Virus record (IMG/VR): IMGVR_UViG_3300023184_004198 | Span: 124,001-188,000 of that record | Reading direction: 5' to 3' (one strand) | DNA length: 64,000 nucleotides | Program-made: the position numbers and the translations under genes | The notes under the pieces: generated by a model | Databases searched by the model: none | Seen by the model: only the letters and a program-made list of their open reading frames with translations | What the model was told of the DNA's origin: nothing | Shown: piece after piece, positions 8,837-47,354 of the stretch | How positions within the stretch are numbered: the first letter of the stretch is position 1 | Layout: each line of letters begins with the position of its first letter

Positions 8837-9303
8837 GTGGGCCAGACCCAGCCCATGTTTTCAAGTTGATGTATCCATGAAAACACAGGTGCGTTGAACT
8901 GCAACTGCCATCGACCATTCCACCCCAGGTGTGTTTCCCCGGCTTGAACAGGATTCGGCTGGGGATTTTGCTGACTGTACCAGGGTTCAGGAAACACTGG
9001 CTCATAAGTGGCCAGCCAGTTGAAACGTGGCACATGTATGCTGTTGATTCTAATGGCACCAATGGTGATGTACTTGTCTAGCCCAAGGTGTGGTATGCAG
9101 TCTGAATCTTGTTTGTTCACAAAATCAACGATCACACTGTGTGGACCAGCAGTCAACAGTTGATCAAATCTCAAAGTAGTTGGCCGGCTTAGTTGCATGC
9201 GATCAACTGCATGATCAACGCCGTACATGATTTCAGGCACACTGCTGTGATATGTGGGCATGACATCTATTTCAATTTCAGTTTGATATTTTTTTGTATC
9301 CAT
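8833..9303 (-). CDS. Hypothetical protein coupled to the radical SAM gene
   Basis: Overlaps the 3' end of the radical SAM ORF; start at MDTKK. Confidence 0.65.
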
Positions 9304-10639
9304 ATTGTTCCAAGAAGTCAGTCCATTCTGGATAGTAGTCTCTGGCATCTAACTCGCAGTGGTGATCCCATTTGTTGAGCCAGCCAACCAGTTCTGTTTT
9401 GAGTGCTTCGGCATTGGGCAGTTCGGGCACTTGAATCATCTTGTACACACTGTTGAGTTCGTTGTACAGGTTAAGGGCATTCTTGCCATACTCTCTGCTT
9501 TGTGGCATGTCTGGATGTTGGTCTTGTTTGATATATGTACTCAATTTGTCAAGCACACGCTCGTATTCGGCAAAATAACTTTGTCTAATGTCCAAGGGCA
9601 ATGCGGCCGCCCGCAAATACGCAGGATTCCAGCAGGTGTTGTTTTCTGTGATGATGTTGCTGTCAAACATCCACTCCGTGAGTGCAGGAAATGTGGGCAC
9701 AGTGAGTGCAGTGATGGTGGGCTTCAAACACACGCAGAATGTTTCACTTTGATGCGACAAGAATGAACGGATGTTGTTCCAGTACAGTTCTTTGTCCAGA
9801 CCCTGGCGAATGTAAAAATTGTTATCTGACACAGACTCAATGCTGATGTCAATGTCTGCTCGGAAGAATCGAGCAAACTTTTCAGCAATCTCTCGACTGT
9901 ATATGGTGCCGTTGGAGATCAAACTCACAGCAAAGTCAGTGCGATCATGCTCAATAAAGAAATCCAAGAACTGTTCCAGTCTGGGACTCATAAAAGGCTC
10001 GCCGCCCATGAAGTGAACACTGCGCAGGTTCTTCATGCCCAGCAGTTCGTTCAGGAACCGTTGCCAAACTTCTTCATCATCCATCCAGTTCATTCTGGTA
10101 TGGTAGTCTTCTTTGCTGAGTATGCCCCAGATTTTGTATTTGGTTGCAATCTGTGTGCTGTAACTGGGGTTGCAATGTTTACAGTATAGGTTACATTCAT
10201 TGCCCATGTCAATATGCAGGTCCACAGGCATGCCATCGTAGTGCTCGTCCACGGCTTGACCAGATTGTTCACTGGTGAAAATATCATGGTGTGGGCTTTG
10301 TTCAAAACTTTGTTGAAAGTTTTGTTGGGTAAAGATAACACTGCGCCAATTGTGAGTGTTGCGATAACTGTCATTGCCATACTGTTCGTCTTGATAGCAG
10401 CCGGCACATTCAGCCAAAGGTTGGTCGCCCAGCATGGCAGCACGATAACGTTTCATTTTTTCACTGCGATACCACTCACGGATTGACGTGGTTTTGATAT
10501 TGGCTTTTACTTGTTCGGGTTGTTTGGCATAGCCATCGAACACAGGTGCTCGTTCACTGCAACACAGACCATAACTGCCGTCGTGGTAAAGTTGCATGTG
10601 GAACCAAGGCACATTACAGAATATTTTGGGATTTGGCAT
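9278..10639 (-). CDS. Radical SAM protein with N-terminal SPASM/Twitch-like domain
   Basis: CNLYCKHC, FMGGEP; N-terminal C..PW..CC..C..C; late hexamer 6 nt upstream. Confidence 0.9.
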   Translation of the reverse strand: MPNPKIFCNVPWFHMQLYHDGSYGLCCSERAPVFDGYAKQPEQVKANIKTTSIREWYRSEKMKRYRAAMLGDQPLAECAGCYQDEQYGNDSYRNTHNWRSVIFTQQNFQQSFEQSPHHDIFTSEQSGQAVDEHYDGMPVDLHIDMGNECNLYCKHCNPSYSTQIATKYKIWGILSKEDYHTRMNWMDDEEVWQRFLNELLGMKNLRSVHFMGGEPFMSPRLEQFLDFFIEHDRTDFAVSLISNGTIYSREIAEKFARFFRADIDISIESVSDNNFYIRQGLDKELYWNNIRSFLSHQSETFCVCLKPTITALTVPTFPALTEWMFDSNIITENNTCWNPAYLRAAALPLDIRQSYFAEYERVLDKLSTYIKQDQHPDMPQSREYGKNALNLYNELNSVYKMIQVPELPNAEALKTELVGWLNKWDHHCELDARDYYPEWTDFLEQYGYKKISN

Positions 10640-29140: not shown

Positions 29141-29469
29141 TAAGTAAAAGTGGTGGTAGAACAACACATTGCAATCAAATAGGATCTTCTACTGCTGATT
29201 GGTATCTTGTCCAATTGAAAAAAACAAGTACCCGTAGCACTGGCAGAGGTTTGTCCAAGCCAACATCAGTGTTCGAAAGAGACTCTCGGAAAGTCTCTTC
29301 GTTGACAACTAGAATTGGACAGGGTCATTTCTCAGGACGCGACCTTGTCCCAAACGAGTATGCCAAGGAGGCCCGAGGTCTATCTATGCTCATCTCAATC
29401 CCTAATCTGTCAACGTGATTTACTCGGGTAACCGCGTACGGCCACGTATTGGCTTCTAAAGGAAATCTA
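29141..29469 (+). ncRNA. Long structured 5' leader or ncRNA upstream of the SleB-type hydrolase
   Basis: TAAGTA hexamer at 29141; at least five hairpins, e.g. AAGAGACT/AGTCTCTT and GGACAGGGTC/GACCTTGTCC. Confidence 0.6.
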
Positions 29470-30045
29470 ATGAAATTGAATGTTAATCGACCCAATGCTC
29501 TAGCAACTTGGGCAGGTAGAATTATCAAAACTGTGGCTCTGTTTGCAGTGGCATTTACAGTATGGTCAGTGTGTCAATCACGCATGGAAGACCTAAGACA
29601 GAATCAAAACAATTGGGACCAGTCACATGTGAGTGCCGCAGAACGACTGCGCCAGTTGAACTGCTTGACCCAAAACATCTACTGGGAGGCAGCCTCAGAA
29701 CCATTTGAGGGCAAAGTAGCAGTGGCGCAGGTCACGTTAAATAGAGTGGAATCAGGTAGATTTGCACCCACAGTATGCGGTGTGGTTTACCAGAAGAATG
29801 TGTTTTACGAAAAGGTAGTTTGCCAATTCAGCTGGTTGTGTGAGAGCACACACAAAACACGCCCAGTTTATCAGCCCATGTGGCAAGAGAGCGAACTAGT
29901 GGCCAAGAAAGTGTTGTTGGAAAACTTCCGATTGCCCAGCATGAAAAATGCGTTATACTATCACGCTGACTACGTAAACCCCAACTGGCGCAAGCCAAAA
30001 ATTGACCAAATTGGTCGTCACATCTTTTATGGAGAACGTTCATGA
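29470..30045 (+). CDS. Cell wall hydrolase, SleB family
   Basis: CLTQNIYWEA, AVAQVTLNRV, CQFSW, YYHADYVNPNW, IGRHIFY. Confidence 0.92.
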   Translation: MKLNVNRPNALATWAGRIIKTVALFAVAFTVWSVCQSRMEDLRQNQNNWDQSHVSAAERLRQLNCLTQNIYWEAASEPFEGKVAVAQVTLNRVESGRFAPTVCGVVYQKNVFYEKVVCQFSWLCESTHKTRPVYQPMWQESELVAKKVLLENFRLPSMKNALYYHADYVNPNWRKPKIDQIGRHIFYGERS

Positions 30046-32037: not shown

Positions 32038-33033
32038 ATGGCCGCAGAATTAACTATCAAATATGTTGTAGACTCTATTGAAGGCAATTCATTGAGTACC
32101 ACTGTCACTGGACCGGAACATGGTTGGGTAGAATATTGCAATCAACGAGGACAACTTGTTTATGCTGATGCGGTCAGTGAAGAGTTTTATAAAAAATGCC
32201 ACCAACAAGTCATTGAACTCATTACCAAACATGCCATAGAAGATAACAAAAAAAATCTTGGATTTATAAATCACATAAGCAACATACTAGTCAATGATGA
32301 TTTTGTATTTCCCATGTTCGGATCAGTGCCCAACGGCGGCAGTGAACTTGAAATTACCACGGGGGTTACAAGATTAATTGCCAGCATAATGAATGGTCGT
32401 ACCGCTCGAGAATTAAAGACTGTGGCATTTACACCTAAAGGACAATCAGCAACGCAATTAGAAAATTTAAAACCTTTGACCAGTACTGCTAATTTTGAAA
32501 AAATATACAATCTTGCAGATATTGATTACGAAATCAGCATGTCGGACTCCCCAGCTGGCGATATGAGTGAGTTTCGATTTGATCGAAGTGTGCTGAAATA
32601 TTCAATCTATGACAAAAAAGATCAGGCACTGCCACATACTCAAATAGGAGCAAACGTTTCAAATTTTTGGAGTAGACATATTAAAAAAGATAAAATTCAA
32701 TTGAACATAAGATGTACTCCTGAAGTAGAAAAATTAATTCAACCCAGTAAAATTTTTAACTGGAATGTAGTGCATGAAAAACACGAAGAATGGCAATGGA
32801 GTTATGGAAGAATTTTGGGTGCATATCGAAAAACAGAAGTACCTTTGTCCTTTGATGAGTCTCAAATTCATCTCTGGTTGTACGATGTGTCTGAACCTGT
32901 GTACTTGGAATTGTTATTGCCTTGGGTCACTGGACAATATACTTGTTGCCATACCAAAAATAAAAAAGCATTGTTTTTTGACACTTCCAGTGATGTGACC
33001 AGTATGCAAATTGTTGGAGACTGGGTCAAATAA
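32038..33033 (+). CDS. Hypothetical protein (AT-rich gene)
   Basis: 331-aa ORF, TAAGTA upstream; no family recognised. Confidence 0.7.
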
Positions 33034-33251
33034 TGGCCAAGGAAGAAACAATTAATATGGAAGGCAAGGTGCAAGAAATTCTACCCAATGCCATGTTTAG
33101 AGTATTGCTGGATGATGTCAACACAGAAGTTATAGGATACTTGTCGGGAAAAATGCGCACTCATAATATCAAGGTGTTGCTGGGTGATAGGGTTGCCATG
33201 GAATTTAGTCCTTACGATTTGACACGTGGGCGTATTACAAGAAGAAGATGA
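33033..33251 (+). CDS. infA: Translation initiation factor IF-1
   Basis: [44 protein letters not shown]. Confidence 0.95.
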
Positions 33252-33884: not shown

Positions 33885-34433
33885 ATGGAACTGAGAGATC
33901 ACATTAACCTAGTAGAGGCCAGTACTAGACCGGCCAAGTTGGAAACCACTCCCTTGCCTTATGGTCCCAAAGACTTGGCACCGGTGATGAGTGCTGACAC
34001 AATTAATTATCATTTTGAACACTTGGCCAAGGGCTATGCAAAACGTTATAATGCTGGAGAAGGCAATGCAGATTTCAATCGTGCTGGCAGTTTTTTACAC
34101 AATAAGTTTTTCCCTCAGCTTCGCGCTCCCAAAGGTGCCAACAGACCCCGTGGTGCTGTACTTGCCTTGATTGAAGAGCATTTCAAAACCTACGAAGACT
34201 TCAAAGAGGCTGTTAAAGAAAAGGCCATGAAGATACAGGGTTCAGGTTGGGTGTATTTGAGCACTGGTGGTGAAATCAAAACCATTGCCAACCATGCTGT
34301 GCGCACAGATATCTGTGTGCTCATTGACTGGTGGGAACACGCCTGGGCATTGGATTATCAAAGCGACAAAGAACGCTATCTAGATAACATCTGGAAAATA
34401 ATAGATTGGGACGTCTGTAACGAACGTCTGTAA
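33885..34433 (+). CDS. sod: Fe/Mn superoxide dismutase with N-terminal extension
   Basis: LPY..LAPVMS..YHFEH, FLHNKFF, GSGW, DWWEHAW. Confidence 0.92.
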   Translation: MELRDHINLVEASTRPAKLETTPLPYGPKDLAPVMSADTINYHFEHLAKGYAKRYNAGEGNADFNRAGSFLHNKFFPQLRAPKGANRPRGAVLALIEEHFKTYEDFKEAVKEKAMKIQGSGWVYLSTGGEIKTIANHAVRTDICVLIDWWEHAWALDYQSDKERYLDNIWKIIDWDVCNERL

Positions 34434-34442
34434 GGAGTCGGC

Positions 34443-34706
34443 ATGTGGCAACTACTGTGGGTACTACTGCCCGTTGTGGCACATGCGGACATGAATGATT
34501 GTGTGAGAGAACCCAACCAGGATAAAAAGAATTATTGTATGGCTACTTACAGCGGGAGTGCCGCTTTTTGCGATCGAATACGAGGCTACGAATATCGAAC
34601 ACAATGCATGCGAATGGTCATTGCCAAGCAACGAGAAGTCGCATATCAAACACCCAAACCACCCACAAAGGAAAAAAAGAATGAACCTGCAACCAGCGGC
34701 CATTAG
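34443..34706 (+). CDS. Small secreted Cys-rich protein
   Basis: Signal peptide plus four Cys. Confidence 0.65.
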
Positions 34707-35001
34707 CAAACTAAAAGAACTTGTTGCTGAAGAAGGCAACCCTGAACTAAAACTACGAGTATTTGTACAAGGTGGAGGATGTTCAGGATTCAGTTATGGT
34801 TTTACATTTGATGAAGCTCGAAACGAAGATGATTTTGATTTCTCTTACGACACTGTGCAAGTTGTTGTAGATGCCATGAGCATGCAGTATCTACAAGGAT
34901 CAGAGATTGATTACAAAGAAGATATGATGGGCGCCAGCTTTGTGATCAACAATCCGCAAGCAGTCAGCACTTGCGGATGTGGATCAAGTTTTAGCATTTA
35001 A
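34681..35001 (+). CDS. erpA: A-type Fe-S carrier (HesB/IscA/ErpA)
   Basis: [28 protein letters not shown]. Confidence 0.92.
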
Positions 35002-37775
35002 ACTGTTTCACCATTTTCGCGGATGAACTCAGTGTCTCCGCCTACAATATCAAACACACGCATCCAGAAGCGTTCCACTGGTCGGAATATCCAACCCCAG
35101 CGGTTTTCGCCGTAATAGTATTTGCCATAGCATACCAAGGGATCTGCAAAAGTCTTTGTGACCAAGAACTTGAACACACGTGACTCACGCATGAGTGGCA
35201 CCAGTACTTCTGCCAGTCGGTAGTAGCCTCTGCGGTTTCGACCAGTCATCTTCTCATCACGGTATCTGCGTACCACTGAATCCATGGTGCCATCACCGTA
35301 GCGAGCTTCAAGCATGATGAAGCAGCAACCACCACCACCACCGCCGCCGCCACCTGCACTGCAACCACTGCCGGCTGAACTGCTGCAACTGCCTGCACTG
35401 CCGTCGCCACCAAATCCTGTTTGTCCCTTGTTATGAACCACAAGGTTGTTGGCTATGTAAGTGTTGTTGCCATCTAGTTTGAAATTATAGATTACTTGTT
35501 GTTGATCTTGATCGCTGTATTCTTCAATTGAGTCGATTACAACCCCCACGCCGTCTTCAGTTTCGACTACATCGCCCACGGCATATTTGCCCACGGTCAT
35601 TTTATACTTGGCGTAGGTCATTACAGGGTCAAAAGATCGCCAACCATGGCCACGTATCCATACTGGGTGATCGCTGGTCATAAATGGTGTGCTGCCGTTG
35701 AATGCCATCATGGTGGCACCGGTTTCGCCCAAAGTGGGTCGCAAAAACTCCAGCACGGTGTTGTGTGCGCCATCCATACCCAGCACAACTTCCCCTAGCG
35801 CAACATCTTCGATATTTTTGCGTGAACCGTCGGCCATGGTAATTTGTGTACCAGCCACAAAGCAACAACAAATACGAACAGTGTCATACACTTTTGGTGG
35901 GGGAGGAGGCAACGCTCTCAAATCCGGGGGTCTAGATACTCTGGCCCAATCATCTGATTGAGATATAAAATAGGGCACAAAAGTTCCAACCACCGGTTCC
36001 CATACCCCAGCTTCGTTTACATACATGCCGTCAATTTGTTTCCACTCGCCATCTACATTAACAAAAATAGTTTTAACTTCTTGCCAACCGCCGGCAGTTC
36101 TCACTCTAGGACCAAAACTGTTGAATATGAACACAGCGCCACCGTTGCCACCTTGCACCGAACCTGGCAGTCCACCTTGTCCTACTCCGGGCAACAGGTT
36201 ATGATATGGACCAGTAAAAGCCACACCCGCACCATTGGGACTTAATGCTGTGCCAGTGGCAATTGGATTTAGATAACTTACTCCTACACCACCGGCTTGT
36301 CCGTAAGCATCACCTTCGCTACTGTAACCATTTTTTCCAGCGCCGCCAGGACCGCCAGGACCGCCTGCCCCTCCACCGCCACCATCTTTGTAGAAATCGC
36401 CTTGATTTTGGCCAACTTGTCCATTGGAAATTCCAGCGGCAGTCTGTCCACGTGGTCCTGGTGCATTGGATTCAGAAATACCAGTATCACTGTTGCCAGC
36501 ACCACCGCCACCAGCGCCACCTACTGCAACTGCTATCAATGTTTCATTTGGTGTTTGTGGATTTAGTACCAATGTGGTACAACCGCCAGACCCACCACCA
36601 CCACCTGAACTGCCCACAGGACCTGCCAGTCCACCAGTGGCGCCTGACCAACTTTTACTAATGACAATGGCCACACCTGCACTTGGCAAAGCTGTTTGAC
36701 TAAATGAAGCAAAGAATGAAATTGTGTGATAGCCTTGACTTACTGTAACATTTGTAGTGTATGCTGTGCTGTATGAATCAGAACCCGGTGTGGTATACAC
36801 CACAACACCATCAATGCTGAGTGTGGCTGTGTTGGCAGCAGCCATCTCAACTTGATAAGACCCAGTGTAAGGAAAATACACATTGGCATAGGTTCTAGCG
36901 CATGAACTGGCTTTGAAATTTTGTTCCCACATACCAAAGTCCAACATCAAATTGCTGTAAATATTGTCAGGCTCTGTGTCAGGATTTGGCACGTATAAAG
37001 GCGGACTGGCTACAGCACTTCTAGTATCAAATACATTTCTCACCAAACCATATCCACCCAACCCTGCATTGCCAGTTGTGGCTATGGTAAGTCCTACTCC
37101 AAATACGCCGTATGTGGCTCCAACATTGGCATTGGCAAGAATACGTATGGTATGATTACCCGGAGTTATAGTGCGTACAAATTGCACACCGCCTGACTCT
37201 TGTGTCTTCCAACTGTCAACACCGGATTCCAACAATACTTCGCCGTCAAGAAAAACTGTGGCTTGGTAATACGCTGCTAATCTAAAAACATAAGTGATAG
37301 AAAAAGGAAAAAATACAGTAAATGATTGATCAAAGTTTAAAGTATTGGCTAAACTGGTGGTACTGCCATCCAATGCTGTGCCAGTGTTCCACACACCAGT
37401 GTCATTCAAAAATTTTGACCAGCGAGCAACCGTGGTAGCACTGGCACGAGGCAGTGCTGTGGTTCTTCCAATAGGAACAGCGGTGCGTGTGTTAAAAATA
37501 CTGTCTTCGTAAGAATTGGCTATGCTACTGTTTCGGCCACTGCCACCAGCAGCGCCCACTGCAATCTCAATCACATCACCAGGATTAACAGTAAACGACG
37601 CTGATACATATCCACCACCAGAGCCTGAGCCACCTTGACGACTCCCGTCGCTGCCGCCGGAACCTCCGCCTGCACCCCAGAGATAAGCCTGTACAGTTTG
37701 TGAATATCCGGCAGCAGGCAAAGTCAGGGTTTGCCGAGCGTTGATCATGCTCAAAGGTCTAATTAGTGTGGTCAT
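34998..37775 (-). CDS. Gly-rich fibre/adhesin with two PA14-like modules, Hint domain and C-terminal CFI-box domain
   Basis: WGAGGG repeats; CFVAGT...VVHN (Hint, 35430-35864); GGCCFIM C-terminal domain. Confidence 0.8.
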
Positions 37776-39244: not shown

Positions 39245-41434
39245 ATGGCACAAGAAATTATCAACATCGGAGCAGTGGCCAACGACGGCGCTGGAGATCC
39301 TTTACGCACTGCGTTTACCAAAACCAACAACAACTTCAGTCAGTTGTTTGCAGCAGGTGGCGTGTCAGGTATTTCAAACGGCACTAGTAATATCAACATA
39401 TTAAACAGTGGTGCTATATTGATGAGCCCACAAGGCGTGGCCAATGTGATCACTGTCACTGCAACTGGCGCTACTGTTACAGGAACACTGATTGGAAACA
39501 CCACAATCAGTGCCGTGGGCAACGTTTTAGCAGGTCAGTTTTTCATTGGCAATGGATCACAACTTACTGGTGTTGTGTCTGTGGCTGCTGCGGCTCTGAT
39601 TACCGGAAACACATTGAGTTCTAACGTTGTAACCAGCAGTTTGACCACAGTGGGCACATTGGGTACGCTCAGTGTCACTGGTAATATTCGCGGTGGCAAT
39701 ATCAATACTCCTGGTGCAGTAGTTGCATCAGGTGATGTTTCTGGCACAAATGTCAATGCAGGCAGCAATGTTAACGCTTCAGGCAATGTCACTGGTGGAA
39801 ATGTAATAGTTGTAGCAGATGTATCAGCAGGTGGTGTTGTCAGTGCTGTGGGCAATGTCAGTGGCGCATATTTCATTGGCAATGGATCACAACTATCAGG
39901 TATTTCTGTAAGCTCTAATGCAGCATTATTGACTTATACCACATTGAGTAGTAATGTTACAGACAGTAGTCTGCGACAACTTGGTACATTGAATTATTTA
40001 AATGTTGGAAATGCATTAGGTGGCAATGGTGCCATCAACTCCAACAGTATTTCTGCTGGAACAACCATTGTGGCCACCGGCAACATCACTGGTGGTAACA
40101 TCAACACTGGAGGCATAGTCACCGCCACAGGGAATATTAATTCAGGTGCAATTATTTCTGCATTTGGCAACATTGCCACAGCAGCCAATATCTCAGGAGG
40201 CAATTTAAATATTGCTACTCAAATTTTCAGTGCTGGAGACATCAACGCTGTTGGTAATATTACAGGCGGTAATGTCAACACCGGTGGCGAATTGTTTGCT
40301 GCTGGCAATGTTTATGGCGCCAATATTCAAGGTGGTGCCAATGTATTTGCTACATTGCACACAGGAACCACAGTGTCAATGACTGGTAATATACGTGGTG
40401 GTAACCTGATCACAGCCGGTTTGGCCAATGTAGCAGGACGAGTAGAAGCTGGCAACATTTTAACTTATGGTACAGTTACTGCTATTGGCAACGTCACAGC
40501 ACCAAACTTCATAGGCAATGTTGTTGGTAATATCACTGGTACATTGTCTGCACCAGGATCCAATACACAAGTGGTGTTTAACGATTCTGGTACAGCCAAT
40601 GCCAATGCAAGTTTAACATTCAACAAGACCACTGGAGCACTCACAGCCAATGGTACTATAACAGGCGGCAATATTAACACAGCAGGCACACTCAGTGTTG
40701 GTGGTAGCACCATTATTGCTGGCAACTTGACAGTGAGTGGCACAACTGAATATACCAACGTTTCCACTTTGGCCATACAAGATCCTATCATCAGCATAGG
40801 TCGTGGTGCCAACAATGCTGCGCTGTTGAGCAGTGACGGCAAAGATCGCGGCGAACAATTGTATTATTTTAGTTCTGCTGAGCGATCGGCGTTTATTGGT
40901 TATCAAGCCAGCTCAGGCAAATTGATAGCAGCAGTACAAACTACCATTACCAACGAAGTTGTAACAGTCAACAGTTATGGAACCATTGTGGTTGGCACAG
41001 TAGAAGGCACAGCACTCAATGTCACCGGCAATGTACAAGGTGGCAATGTGATATCCAATGCTCTGGTGCAAGGTGCAAGCCTCAGCGTTACTGGTAACAC
41101 CGCCACAGTCACAAGTGCCAATTATCAAATTGGCTACAGAGACTTGCCGCAGATTACCACATTCAGCACTTTGGTTGCAGATGCCGGTGGCAAACATTAC
41201 TACGGTTCGGGCACTATTACTATCCCTGCCAGTGGTACACTGAATTTTGCTGTGGGCACTGCTATCTTGATTATTGCTAGTAACAGCACTACCATTGCTA
41301 ATGCCGCTGGTGTCACACTGATTCAAGCCGGCACTGGATCCACAGGATCAAGAACTTTGGCACAATACGGTGAGGCCAGCTTGGTCAAAGTGGCCACAGA
41401 TACCTGGTACATATCAGGCGTAGGAATAAGTTAA
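39245..41434 (+). CDS. Tail/baseplate fibre protein with T4 gp9/gp10-like N-terminus and GNITGGN repeats
   Basis: INIGAVANDGAGDPLRTAFTKTNNNF; many GNVxGGN repeats; C-terminal W-Y-I-S-G module. Confidence 0.85.
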   Translation: MAQEIINIGAVANDGAGDPLRTAFTKTNNNFSQLFAAGGVSGISNGTSNINILNSGAILMSPQGVANVITVTATGATVTGTLIGNTTISAVGNVLAGQFFIGNGSQLTGVVSVAAAALITGNTLSSNVVTSSLTTVGTLGTLSVTGNIRGGNINTPGAVVASGDVSGTNVNAGSNVNASGNVTGGNVIVVADVSAGGVVSAVGNVSGAYFIGNGSQLSGISVSSNAALLTYTTLSSNVTDSSLRQLGTLNYLNVGNALGGNGAINSNSISAGTTIVATGNITGGNINTGGIVTATGNINSGAIISAFGNIATAANISGGNLNIATQIFSAGDINAVGNITGGNVNTGGELFAAGNVYGANIQGGANVFATLHTGTTVSMTGNIRGGNLITAGLANVAGRVEAGNILTYGTVTAIGNVTAPNFIGNVVGNITGTLSAPGSNTQVVFNDSGTANANASLTFNKTTGALTANGTITGGNINTAGTLSVGGSTIIAGNLTVSGTTEYTNVSTLAIQDPIISIGRGANNAALLSSDGKDRGEQLYYFSSAERSAFIGYQASSGKLIAAVQTTITNEVVTVNSYGTIVVGTVEGTALNVTGNVQGGNVISNALVQGASLSVTGNTATVTSANYQIGYRDLPQITTFSTLVADAGGKHYYGSGTITIPASGTLNFAVGTAILIIASNSTTIANAAGVTLIQAGTGSTGSRTLAQYGEASLVKVATDTWYISGVGIS

Positions 41435-45851: not shown

Positions 45852-47354
45852 ATGTCAAGTAATATTAACCCAAACAACATTGACGGCACATACCCCATTG
45901 CTGGTCAAGACAATAACTCACAAGGTTTTCGTGACAATTTCACGCAGACCAAAGTTAACTTTCAGTATGCAGCCGATGAAATCAATGACTTGCAGGCCAA
46001 GGGTATTTTCAAAGCAGCACTTACTGGTACCACACTTGACAACAACATGAATGATGCGCTGTTGTATGCTGCCTTGATTCAAGATTTTGCCGCGGTAAAA
46101 ATTGCACCCAGTCCGATTTCAGGCACATTAACATTGAATTATGCATCAGCACACTATCAAAGTTATACCACTGCCTCAGCAGGCAGTGTAACTCTGGCAT
46201 TTTCTAACTTTCCACCGTCGGGTACATATGGTTACATGAAATTGCAATTTACTGTGACCAATGTGAGTTACACATTGACCTTGCCTGCCGCAGTGAGTTT
46301 GGGTATCACAGGTGTGCAAGGTATTAGTCCTGGCACAGCAGGTATTCCCAATACCATTACATTTGGAACTACTGGTGTATATGAATTTGGTTTTGGCAGT
46401 TATGATGGTGGTAGCACCATAACCGTGTTTGACTTGAATCGTCCGTTGACATCCTTAGGAGGTGGTGCAGTCACTGTAGGTAGCCTAACTGCCAGTAGTT
46501 TTGTCAGCGCAACAGGCAATGTGATTGGTGGCAACATCAACTCAGCAGGTCTAGCATCAATCACTGGCAATGTGATTGGTGGCAACATCAACTCAGCAGG
46601 TCTAGCATCAATCACTGGCAACATTCAAGGTGGCAATCTTCGCACAGTTGGCTTGGTCAGTGCCACAGGCAATGTCACAGGTGGCAACATTAATGGATTT
46701 GTCAGACCCTCCGTAGGCACTGCAACAGTTCCTGCATTGTCATTTACCACAGGCCTCAATATGACCACTCCTACAGCAGGTGCTGTAGAGTATGACGGTG
46801 TTACATTCTATGGTACTCCCAATGCCAGCAATCGCGGTGTTTTAAACACATCGCACTTCATGGTCCTGGCCAGCGATTACATTGGCAGCGATACAAGTTC
46901 TGCACAAAAAGTTTTTAACCTAGGCACAGGATCAGCAGGTGCAATCACACTGCCTGCCAGCACCGCTTATTTCATGGAAGCAGTGTACTACATCACACGA
47001 GGAGTGGGATCAAATTCACACACATTGAGCACACTGTTTGCACTGAGTTCAGCATTGACCGGTATTACATACACTGCCGATACTACTAGTACCACTGGTA
47101 ATACCCTGGGTGCTGTGAGTAGAATATATGGTACAGCGGCCACAGCAGTGGCAGTCACTGGTGCCAGTACCAGTACAACTGAAAACATCACTGTGGTAAT
47201 TCGTGGCATTGTTCGTACCAATGCATCTACAACCTTTACACCACAAGTGCAATACAGTTCGGCACCAGGTGGCGCTCCCACATTCTTGACCAACAGTTAT
47301 ATTCGATTGACACCAATCGGTAGCGGTGCTGTGACTTATGTGGGCAACTGGTAA
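45852..47354 (+). CDS. Virion structural protein
   Basis: MSSNINPNNIDGTYPIAGQDNNSQGFRDNF N-terminus; GNxxGGN repeats. Confidence 0.8.
   Translation: MSSNINPNNIDGTYPIAGQDNNSQGFRDNFTQTKVNFQYAADEINDLQAKGIFKAALTGTTLDNNMNDALLYAALIQDFAAVKIAPSPISGTLTLNYASAHYQSYTTASAGSVTLAFSNFPPSGTYGYMKLQFTVTNVSYTLTLPAAVSLGITGVQGISPGTAGIPNTITFGTTGVYEFGFGSYDGGSTITVFDLNRPLTSLGGGAVTVGSLTASSFVSATGNVIGGNINSAGLASITGNVIGGNINSAGLASITGNIQGGNLRTVGLVSATGNVTGGNINGFVRPSVGTATVPALSFTTGLNMTTPTAGAVEYDGVTFYGTPNASNRGVLNTSHFMVLASDYIGSDTSSAQKVFNLGTGSAGAITLPASTAYFMEAVYYITRGVGSNSHTLSTLFALSSALTGITYTADTTSTTGNTLGAVSRIYGTAATAVAVTGASTSTTENITVVIRGIVRTNASTTFTPQVQYSSAPGGAPTFLTNSYIRLTPIGSGAVTYVGNW
46515..46621 (+). repeat. Perfect 51-bp tandem duplication (17 aa)
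   Basis: GGCAATGTGATTGGTGGCAACATCAACTCAGCAGGTCTAGCATCAATCACT twice. Confidence 0.95.

Follow-up and report, generated by a model that had tools for sequence, protein, structure and literature searches.

The 925-residue product of a gene in a 64,000-nucleotide window of viral DNA (the window; positions 124,001 to 188,000 of IMG/VR virus record IMGVR_UViG_3300023184_004198) contains a Hint domain that, judging from its relatives, appears to be a discrete mobile unit that varies in copy number and brings its own flanking residues with it. It precedes a C-terminal domain, referred to here as CC-FIMLE (CFI), that appears to be an undescribed, widespread, and phage-specific module. Our favored explanation, in which as a whole we have only slightly better than even confidence, is that the gene product is a modular tail-associated virion protein with a body, a flexible linker, and an interchangeable C-terminal module, and that the Hint domain is an element expected to remove itself from the protein.

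The Hint domain starts at Cys638, the third cysteine of a CCC-FVAGT motif (codon 35864-35862) and the block A residue, has T700-S-D-H703 as the block B TxxH, and closes with His781-Asn782 of block G (Asn782 codon 35432-35430). A previous interpretation of the window (the sequence-only reading) placed these boundaries at 35430-35864, with 145 amino acids and Lys at +1, exactly to the base. The excised domain matches Pfam Hom_end_hint with 43.9 bits (cutoff 32.1), with weaker support from Hint, Hint_2, Vint, and Intein_splicing, the intein C-terminal splicing block. In an alignment of 39 diverse copies, Cys1, Phe2, Gly5, the block-B His, and one Trp are invariant, the block-B Thr varies among Thr, Ala, and Ser, and more than 90% end in His-Asn-Lys. 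A profile of the same 39 copies searched against the PDB has as its top match the solved structure 2lwy of a bacterial intein-like (BIL) domain (4e-18), followed by the Tetrahymena BUBL BIL2. The Hint is also the best-predicted part of a full-length AlphaFold2 (AF2) model (residues 640-782, predicted local distance difference test [pLDDT] 78-91), where it has the horseshoe Hint fold and superposes on 6y75 with a template modeling (TM) score of 0.80 (by target), on 2lwy with 0.75, and on mini-inteins including gp41-1 within the range 0.75-0.80. Cys at the first position and the block-B His are both features of the HINT superfamily.

A-type BIL domains are defined as Hint domains with a C-terminal His-Asn and no C-flanking nucleophile, located in variable regions of non-conserved proteins (PMC7765530), and the window Hint has each of these properties. 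It shares the terminal His-Asn of class 1 inteins, but its +1 residue is Lys783 rather than Cys, Ser, or Thr, and its insertion site lies within a low-complexity linker and not within a conserved motif, with empty-site alleles in P0073 and P0276. Lacking a Cys, Ser, or Thr at +1, the domain cannot splice in the canonical way, and autoprocessing of the BIL type is to be expected (PMC7664689), in line with the autoprocessing that the sequence-only reading had supposed for a non-splicing Hint. The window protein has no match to PF07591 (PT-HINT), and the Hedgehog/Hog layout is seen only in relatives; here the Hint ends in His-Asn, with the linker and CFI after it. Both the alignments and the structural model thus point to a bona fide, endonuclease-free A-type BIL Hint. 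The literature on Hint domains in tail fibers yielded only ordinary inteins in terminases. Pfam AXH also scores above its cutoff (42 bits) on the N-terminal half to two-thirds of the Hint, and structures of ataxin-1 AXH recur in the profile search of the PDB. We rejected a separate AXH domain and treat this as a sub-fold cross-match; it hints at kinship between AXH, the ataxin-1/HBP1 module, and a Hint half-domain.

More than 100 orthologous bodies, 55-92% identical, were gathered by using the C-terminal region and the body as queries, and they have very different C-terminal ends. These include one Hint followed by CFI (30 clusters), CFI with no Hint (P0073), one to three Hints followed by Peptidase_S74 (PF13884; 27.6 bits, cutoff 22), two Hints with the protein ending exactly at ...HNK, two Hints of which the last is degenerate (...WDE), and a Hog-like terminal Hint without His-Asn but with a tail of about 110 helical/hydrophobic residues, preceded by zero to five HNK-Hints. 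The same body is found with no Hint (P0073), one, two, three, or four to six copies, and a more distant protein (P0083) contains at least seven in tandem, each ending in HN-K/R.

Two comparisons define the inserted unit. In P0073 the site is cleanly empty: the Pro-rich end of the body joins the same C-x8-C linker and CFI directly, and the Cys-Cys...Lys flanks are absent. Because Cys636-Cys637 are missing from this Hint-less orthologue, they evidently travel with the cassette, as Cys-Cys before it and Lys after. Two metagenomic proteins, P0274 and P0276, are approximately 100% identical over about 750 residues upstream and 220 downstream, and differ by exactly one 144-residue Hint. A second, unrelated body likewise has a Hint before CFI in P0069-71 and none in L054/L060.

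The pattern of conservation suggests what the cassette may do. All of the approximately 146 non-terminal Hint copies keep Cys1, the His-Asn, and a +1 Lys (Arg in two), and copies within one protein are only 30-55% identical; in contrast, His-Asn has been lost from six of the ten terminal copies. This suggests strongly that C-terminal cutting is retained exactly where something lies downstream and that every copy in an array is kept active, which is the behavior of a self-removing element. We infer a scheme in which, after translation, an N-to-S acyl shift involving Cys638 and His703 would form a thioester at Cys637/Cys638, cyclization of Asn782 with His781 would cut the C-terminal end of the Hint, and the flanks would be re-joined by attack of an amine on the thioester, the attacker being either the freed alpha-amine of Lys783 or its epsilon-amine. 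If the flanks are re-joined, insertion of the cassette would be phenotypically silent.

The choice between re-joining and a body simply cut from its tail is close to evenly balanced, and we lean to re-joining because middle copies could decay if only the first N-terminal cut mattered, and because alleles that have a copy and alleles that lack one are interchangeable. The thioester could be resolved by an amine of the near-invariant +1 Lys that accompanies the cassette. There is precedent for amine ligation: BIL ligation is possible without a nucleophilic side chain (Aranko 2013, as cited in PMC7664689), and the BUBL BIL2 reaction ends in a Lys isopeptide (PMC8616854). Several considerations count against this scheme. 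The evidence comes from sequences and models of an uncultured phage; BIL domains examined to date yield N- and C-cleaved products for the most part, rather than ligated ones (PMC7664689); the two copies with Arg at +1 disfavor an obligatory epsilon-amine nucleophile; and the arrays could be neutral passengers if the N-terminal cut of the first Hint were the only one that mattered.

The cleavage bias of known BIL domains together with the two Arg copies keeps plain cleavage as the main rival, and we regard it as a real, if clearly less probable, possibility. In such a scheme the Hint would merely cut at both of its ends, as proposed for the pre-toxin Hints of polymorphic toxins, so that body and linker-CFI piece separate in the infected cell, with CFI becoming a free small protein or being discarded. 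Several relatives match PF07591 PT-HINT, the His-Asn is retained in every copy that has a segment downstream of it and is often missing from copies that have none, and the +1 residue is solely Lys or Arg, all of which speaks for release. Lys and Arg are secondary destabilizing residues in the bacterial N-end rule, and their exposure at the new N-terminus could even mark the linker-CFI piece for degradation. However, release leaves unexplained the intact catalytic residues in every middle copy of arrays of four to seven, as well as the otherwise identical alleles with and without a Hint, if insertion uncouples the terminal module. Moreover, most CFI carriers have no Hint, so that CFI normally works attached.

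We consider it quite improbable that the thioester at Cys638 is instead resolved by a nucleophile from outside, such as a small molecule, a Lys of another virion protein, or a host surface group, covalently modifying or anchoring the end of the body. The closest structural match, BUBL BIL2, does transfer its N-extein to lysines of other proteins, and relatives ending in a Hog-like Hint without His-Asn plus a helical/hydrophobic tail have the layout of hedgehog autoprocessing, but the window Hint has an intein-type His-Asn end and no adduct-recognition region. The hedgehog-like attachment that the sequence-only reading proposed is therefore not indicated for this Hint. Furthermore, the Hint is optional, so the adduct cannot be essential, and there is no conserved partner gene adjacent. 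Even less likely is that an inactive Hint simply stays in the mature protein as a spacer, with arrays serving to lengthen the fiber. Arrays of up to seven copies do resemble repeat-built fibers, and in some relatives the Peptidase_S74 (S74) chaperone directly follows the last Hint (HNK-SD.R.K), as if the Hint were its folded client; but an inert bead would not need the Cys1, block-B His, and His-Asn that are kept in all non-terminal copies despite their divergence.

CFI, which the sequence-only reading noted as a GGCCFIM...YRDE..YY domain after the linker, is a real and recurrent family with 570 cluster representatives (50% identity clusters, E ≤ 1e-3) in a library of 1.84 billion proteins. 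Its carriers range from about 95 to 2017 residues (some of the short ones are probably fragments), and in nearly all of those checked CFI is at or near the C-terminus, ending the protein exactly in 188 of 210 and preceded by Gly/Ser-rich low-complexity linkers. In the window protein its motifs run to the stop codon as CC-FIMLE...RRYRDE...GYY...KYYYG. Among 114 diverse copies C1, C2, R20, R23, G34, Y35, P44, M46, Y72, W88, and G96 are invariant, and an AF2 model is a five-helix bundle (pLDDT 89, predicted TM score 0.78). Nonsynonymous differences (pN 0.12-0.20) are far fewer than synonymous ones (pS 0.68-0.88, with synonymous sites saturated between copies), and because pS is saturated while pN is low, the conservation reflects old, strong constraint and not recent transfer. 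CFI occurs once per record in all six records tested.

Among 78 viral contigs with CFI carriers, 77 have carriers without a Hint, so CFI appears from its distribution to be a module independent of the Hint, and the combination of the two a minority one. Most of these carriers are Gly/Ala/Ser-rich proteins of 300-450 residues with a conserved structural-gene neighborhood; in about 47 podovirus-like contigs (viral loci L016-L049) the order is fixed, with an 845-residue structural protein, a 122-residue protein, the CFI carrier, a Gly-rich protein of about 240 residues, and a protein of about 500-700 residues. In the cultured roseophages CRP-13 and CRP-345, CFI is the end of a 1208-residue protein encoded between the portal and coat genes, and in CRP-13 (L001:6308-7003) the CFI-bearing gene is overlapped at its end by a gene for a methyltransferase. 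Comparison of 60 diverse carriers with PHROGs revealed no common family, only a few matches to 'virion structural', 'tape measure', and 'tail fiber assembly', and the conserved neighbors match little besides 'virion structural protein'.

The isolated CFI domain has no Pfam or NCBIfam match at E ≤ 10, and none to an NCBIfam sorting domain of the 'CFI-box-CTERM' type, to which it may still be distantly related; the term 'CFI-box' was not found in the literature. Foldseek returned no match of the CFI model in the PDB, a search of BFVD returned only CRP-13 gp55, and a search of the ESM atlas only unnamed viral clusters, and the AlphaFold database contains similar C-terminal helical domains in unnamed proteins (TM 0.7-0.83). 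The IpaH/SspH NEL E3-ligase domains were considered as kin and rejected, the best VIA-align wide Z of 5.2 being under the meaningful level for helical bundles. At the sensitivity of a pattern scan CFI is absent from 185,579 species-representative prokaryote genomes; the sole match, a chance CCFIMLEA string within a glycoside hydrolase, was discarded.

A possible role for CFI is suggested by what else occupies its position. In orthologous bodies the same slot is filled by Peptidase_S74 or by the Hog-like Hint, the latter (P0264, P0266, P0271-P0279, P0013, P0086) retaining Cys1 and the block-B His, lacking His-Asn, and having a helical tail with a hydrophobic end; this arrangement may represent a phage 'Hog' domain that might attach an adduct to the C-terminus of the body. 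Both S74 and the Hog-like Hint are self-removing modules whose nucleophile is the first residue; the start of CFI is an invariant and structured Cys-Cys. By analogy, and with modest weight, CFI may be a prodomain-like module for assembly or oligomerization, because it shares its slot with two self-removing modules; its Cys-Cys could act as the nucleophile for self-removal, in keeping with the suggestion of the sequence-only reading that CFI may be a second Cys-initiated module, or form an inter-chain disulfide knot after the Gly-rich linker. The resemblance to Peptidase_S74 is of position alone, as CFI does not have the Ser-Lys dyad (S-D-x-R-x-K) of PF13884. Less favorably for a prodomain, CFI could equally be a lasting functional tip with a permanent binding or effector function; a fiber-type chaperone role is not obvious in the low-complexity Gly/Ala/Ser-rich carriers or the portal-adjacent roseophage protein, and the CFI model has no significant structural neighbor of known function.

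These relationships also bear on the larger claims of the sequence-only reading. Its association of the C-terminal region with shed fiber chaperones is borne out by the S74-bearing orthologues, but its suggestion that the Hint replaces S74 is not, since Hint and S74 occur together in more than 25 orthologues and it is CFI that occupies the S74 position. Nor are Hint and CFI an obligate two-step machine, as P0073 has the same body and CFI with no Hint. The Hint plus CFI architecture does recur, with this body and on the second one, but it is the exception among CFI carriers. An idea that CFI is a delivered effector or toxin freed by the Hint, as in polymorphic toxin systems, would fit the layout of carrier, Hint, and C-terminal domain, the single CFI per genome, and the variety of its carriers, some of them located as ejected internal virion proteins are, but is scarcely credible given that CFI is extremely conserved instead of polymorphic, resembles no toxin family, usually has no preceding Hint, and is followed by no conserved immunity-like or small gene.

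A more far-reaching proposal joins both domains: the HN-Lys Hints would be a new class that splices without Cys, Ser, or Thr through the amine of the +1 Lys, leaving a peptide or isopeptide junction, and CC-FIMLE would be a new Cys-initiated assembly prodomain, self-removing or disulfide-knotting, present once per genome in many aquatic phages. A class splicing through the Lys amine would account for the intact copies in arrays of up to seven and for the interchangeable alleles, but we consider the proposal unlikely to hold.

The features of the gene and its surroundings are listed in Table 1. The Gly-rich segments of the body have a weak match to PF21722, and the protein is probably glycan-binding. 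The sequence-only reading called it a fiber protein; the location, with only 3 nt between the stop codon of a tail-fiber gene and the ATG of the 925-codon open reading frame (ORF), agrees with this, but the body itself models as Gly-rich and PA14/CBM-like beta-sandwich and not as a long fiber. The linker is disordered in the AF2 model, and its motif, G-x-C-x4-GS-x2-C-[ST]-[AG], is kept across orthologues regardless of the terminal module (P0073, P0264, P0276); a metal site and a disulfide are possibilities for its C-x8-C pair. The G+C content at third codon positions (GC3) is about 0.33 for the body and rises stepwise to roughly 0.51-0.53 for the Hint and CFI. A mosaic origin from this step is suggestive only, since 14% of same-size windows in the genome reach that value.

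Table 1. Coordinates of the Hint/CFI gene, its parts, and other genes in the window.
Feature	Coordinates	Strand	Remarks
Whole ORF, 925 aa + stop: body, Hint, linker, CFI	34998-37775	-	129 body orthologues at E ≤ 1e-10
Body, residues 1-635	35871-37775	-	Gly-rich segments, two PA14/CBM-like beta-sandwich domains, short beta-hairpin region, Pro-rich end
Cys636-Cys637, Hint residues -2/-1	35865-35870	-	-1 is Cys in 87/143 copies
Hint, predicted BIL-type, residues 638-782, 145 aa	35430-35864	-	Pfam, profile search, AF2 model
Lys783, +1 residue	35427-35429	-	Lys/Arg after all non-terminal copies
Gly/Ser/Cys linker, residues 784-816	35328-35426	-	C-x8-C motif; pLDDT <50
CC-FIMLE (CFI) C-terminal domain, residues 817-925, 109 aa	35001-35327	-	Five-helix bundle (model), invariant residues
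Tail-fiber gene, phrog_2631, 465 aa	37779-39176	-	Upstream, co-directional; tandem SPAFxGxPTAPTA repeats
IscA-type Fe-S carrier	34558-35001	+	Convergent; 4-nt overlap with 3' end of Hint/CFI gene
Fe/Mn superoxide dismutase-like protein	33885-34433	+	Jumbo phage gene
Translation initiation factor IF-1	33033-33251	+	Jumbo phage gene
SleB-type cell-wall hydrolase	29449-30045	+	Jumbo phage gene
Radical SAM protein	9278-10639	-	Jumbo phage gene

The record from which the window derives is 212,614 bp with a CheckV completeness of 61%, and is therefore that of a jumbo phage, uncultured and from freshwater; lake and freshwater metagenomes are the origin of the DNA, and a body orthologue is present on a 351-kb contig. 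The record contains one Hint and one CFI in total. When contigs of four independent runs were aligned to the gene, an identical allele was found in an independent 2025 freshwater sample from another lake, and no Hint-skipping joint was seen in these contigs, three of the runs having very thin coverage. The Hint plus CFI architecture of the 925-residue protein was not found among 50,697 GenBank phage records. The adjacent tail-fiber gene encodes four to five tandem repeats of about 35 residues (SPAFxGxPTAPTA...TTQIATTxFV) followed by repeated ...AVADGGTGA...ARTNLGL units. Two large ORFs lie near the fiber genes, at 39245-41434 (+), which is composed of GN[IV]xGGN-type repeats, and at 45852-47354 (+); no match in Pfam or among PHROGs was obtained for either.

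BIL-type domains have been described in bacterial surface proteins and in ciliate ubiquitin-like loci. Their occurrence here in phage virion proteins, with variable copy number, a conserved +1 Lys, and His-Asn retained where something lies downstream, makes directly testable, with one small construct, the long-standing question of whether they cut or ligate in nature, and by which nucleophile. Such a compact 145-residue domain could provide a ligation or cleavage tool that needs no Cys, Ser, or Thr. Establishing the role of CFI, a large, unannotated, virus-restricted family whose position mirrors that of S74, would give an annotation to a feature that recurs in the virions of aquatic phages.

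Among the known systems, Peptidase_S74 of phage fibers and endosialidases is like CFI in its slot, in being a promiscuous end module, and in having a conserved nucleophile-type residue at its first position, but the two share neither sequence nor fold, and CFI begins with Cys-Cys, not with a residue of a Ser-Lys dyad. The PT-HINT domains of polymorphic toxins similarly lie just before the C-terminal module of a long surface protein, and relatives of the window protein match PF07591; here, however, the module after the Hint is conserved instead of polymorphic, an immunity gene is lacking, and the window protein scores below the PF07591 threshold. Hedgehog/Hog domains are similar in that Cys-thioester chemistry takes place where a secreted or surface protein ends, and relatives such as P0264 and P0276 end in a Hint without His-Asn and a hydrophobic tail, whereas the window Hint is internal, ends in His-Asn, and is without an adduct-recognition region. 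Tetrahymena BUBL1 BIL2 (6y75/6tmm) is the best structural match and its Lys isopeptide is a precedent for amine-resolved Hint chemistry, but the BUBL Hints flank ubiquitin-like domains, which they attach to other proteins; here there is no ubiquitin-like domain, and the Lys belongs to the same chain as its +1 residue. Closest of all is the A-type BIL domain of Clostridium thermocellum (2lwy), with the best profile match, the same Cys1, block-B His, and His-Asn, no +1 Cys, Ser, or Thr, no endonuclease, and a location in variable regions of non-essential surface proteins. It differs in that the phage domains reside in virion proteins with a near-invariant +1 Lys and a frequent Cys-Cys flank, form arrays of up to seven copies, have documented presence/absence alleles, and adjoin S74, Hog-like, or CFI terminal modules. 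The BIL type itself is thus already known, and what is new is its occurrence in phage virion proteins, as a cassette of variable copy number that has a near-invariant Lys at +1.

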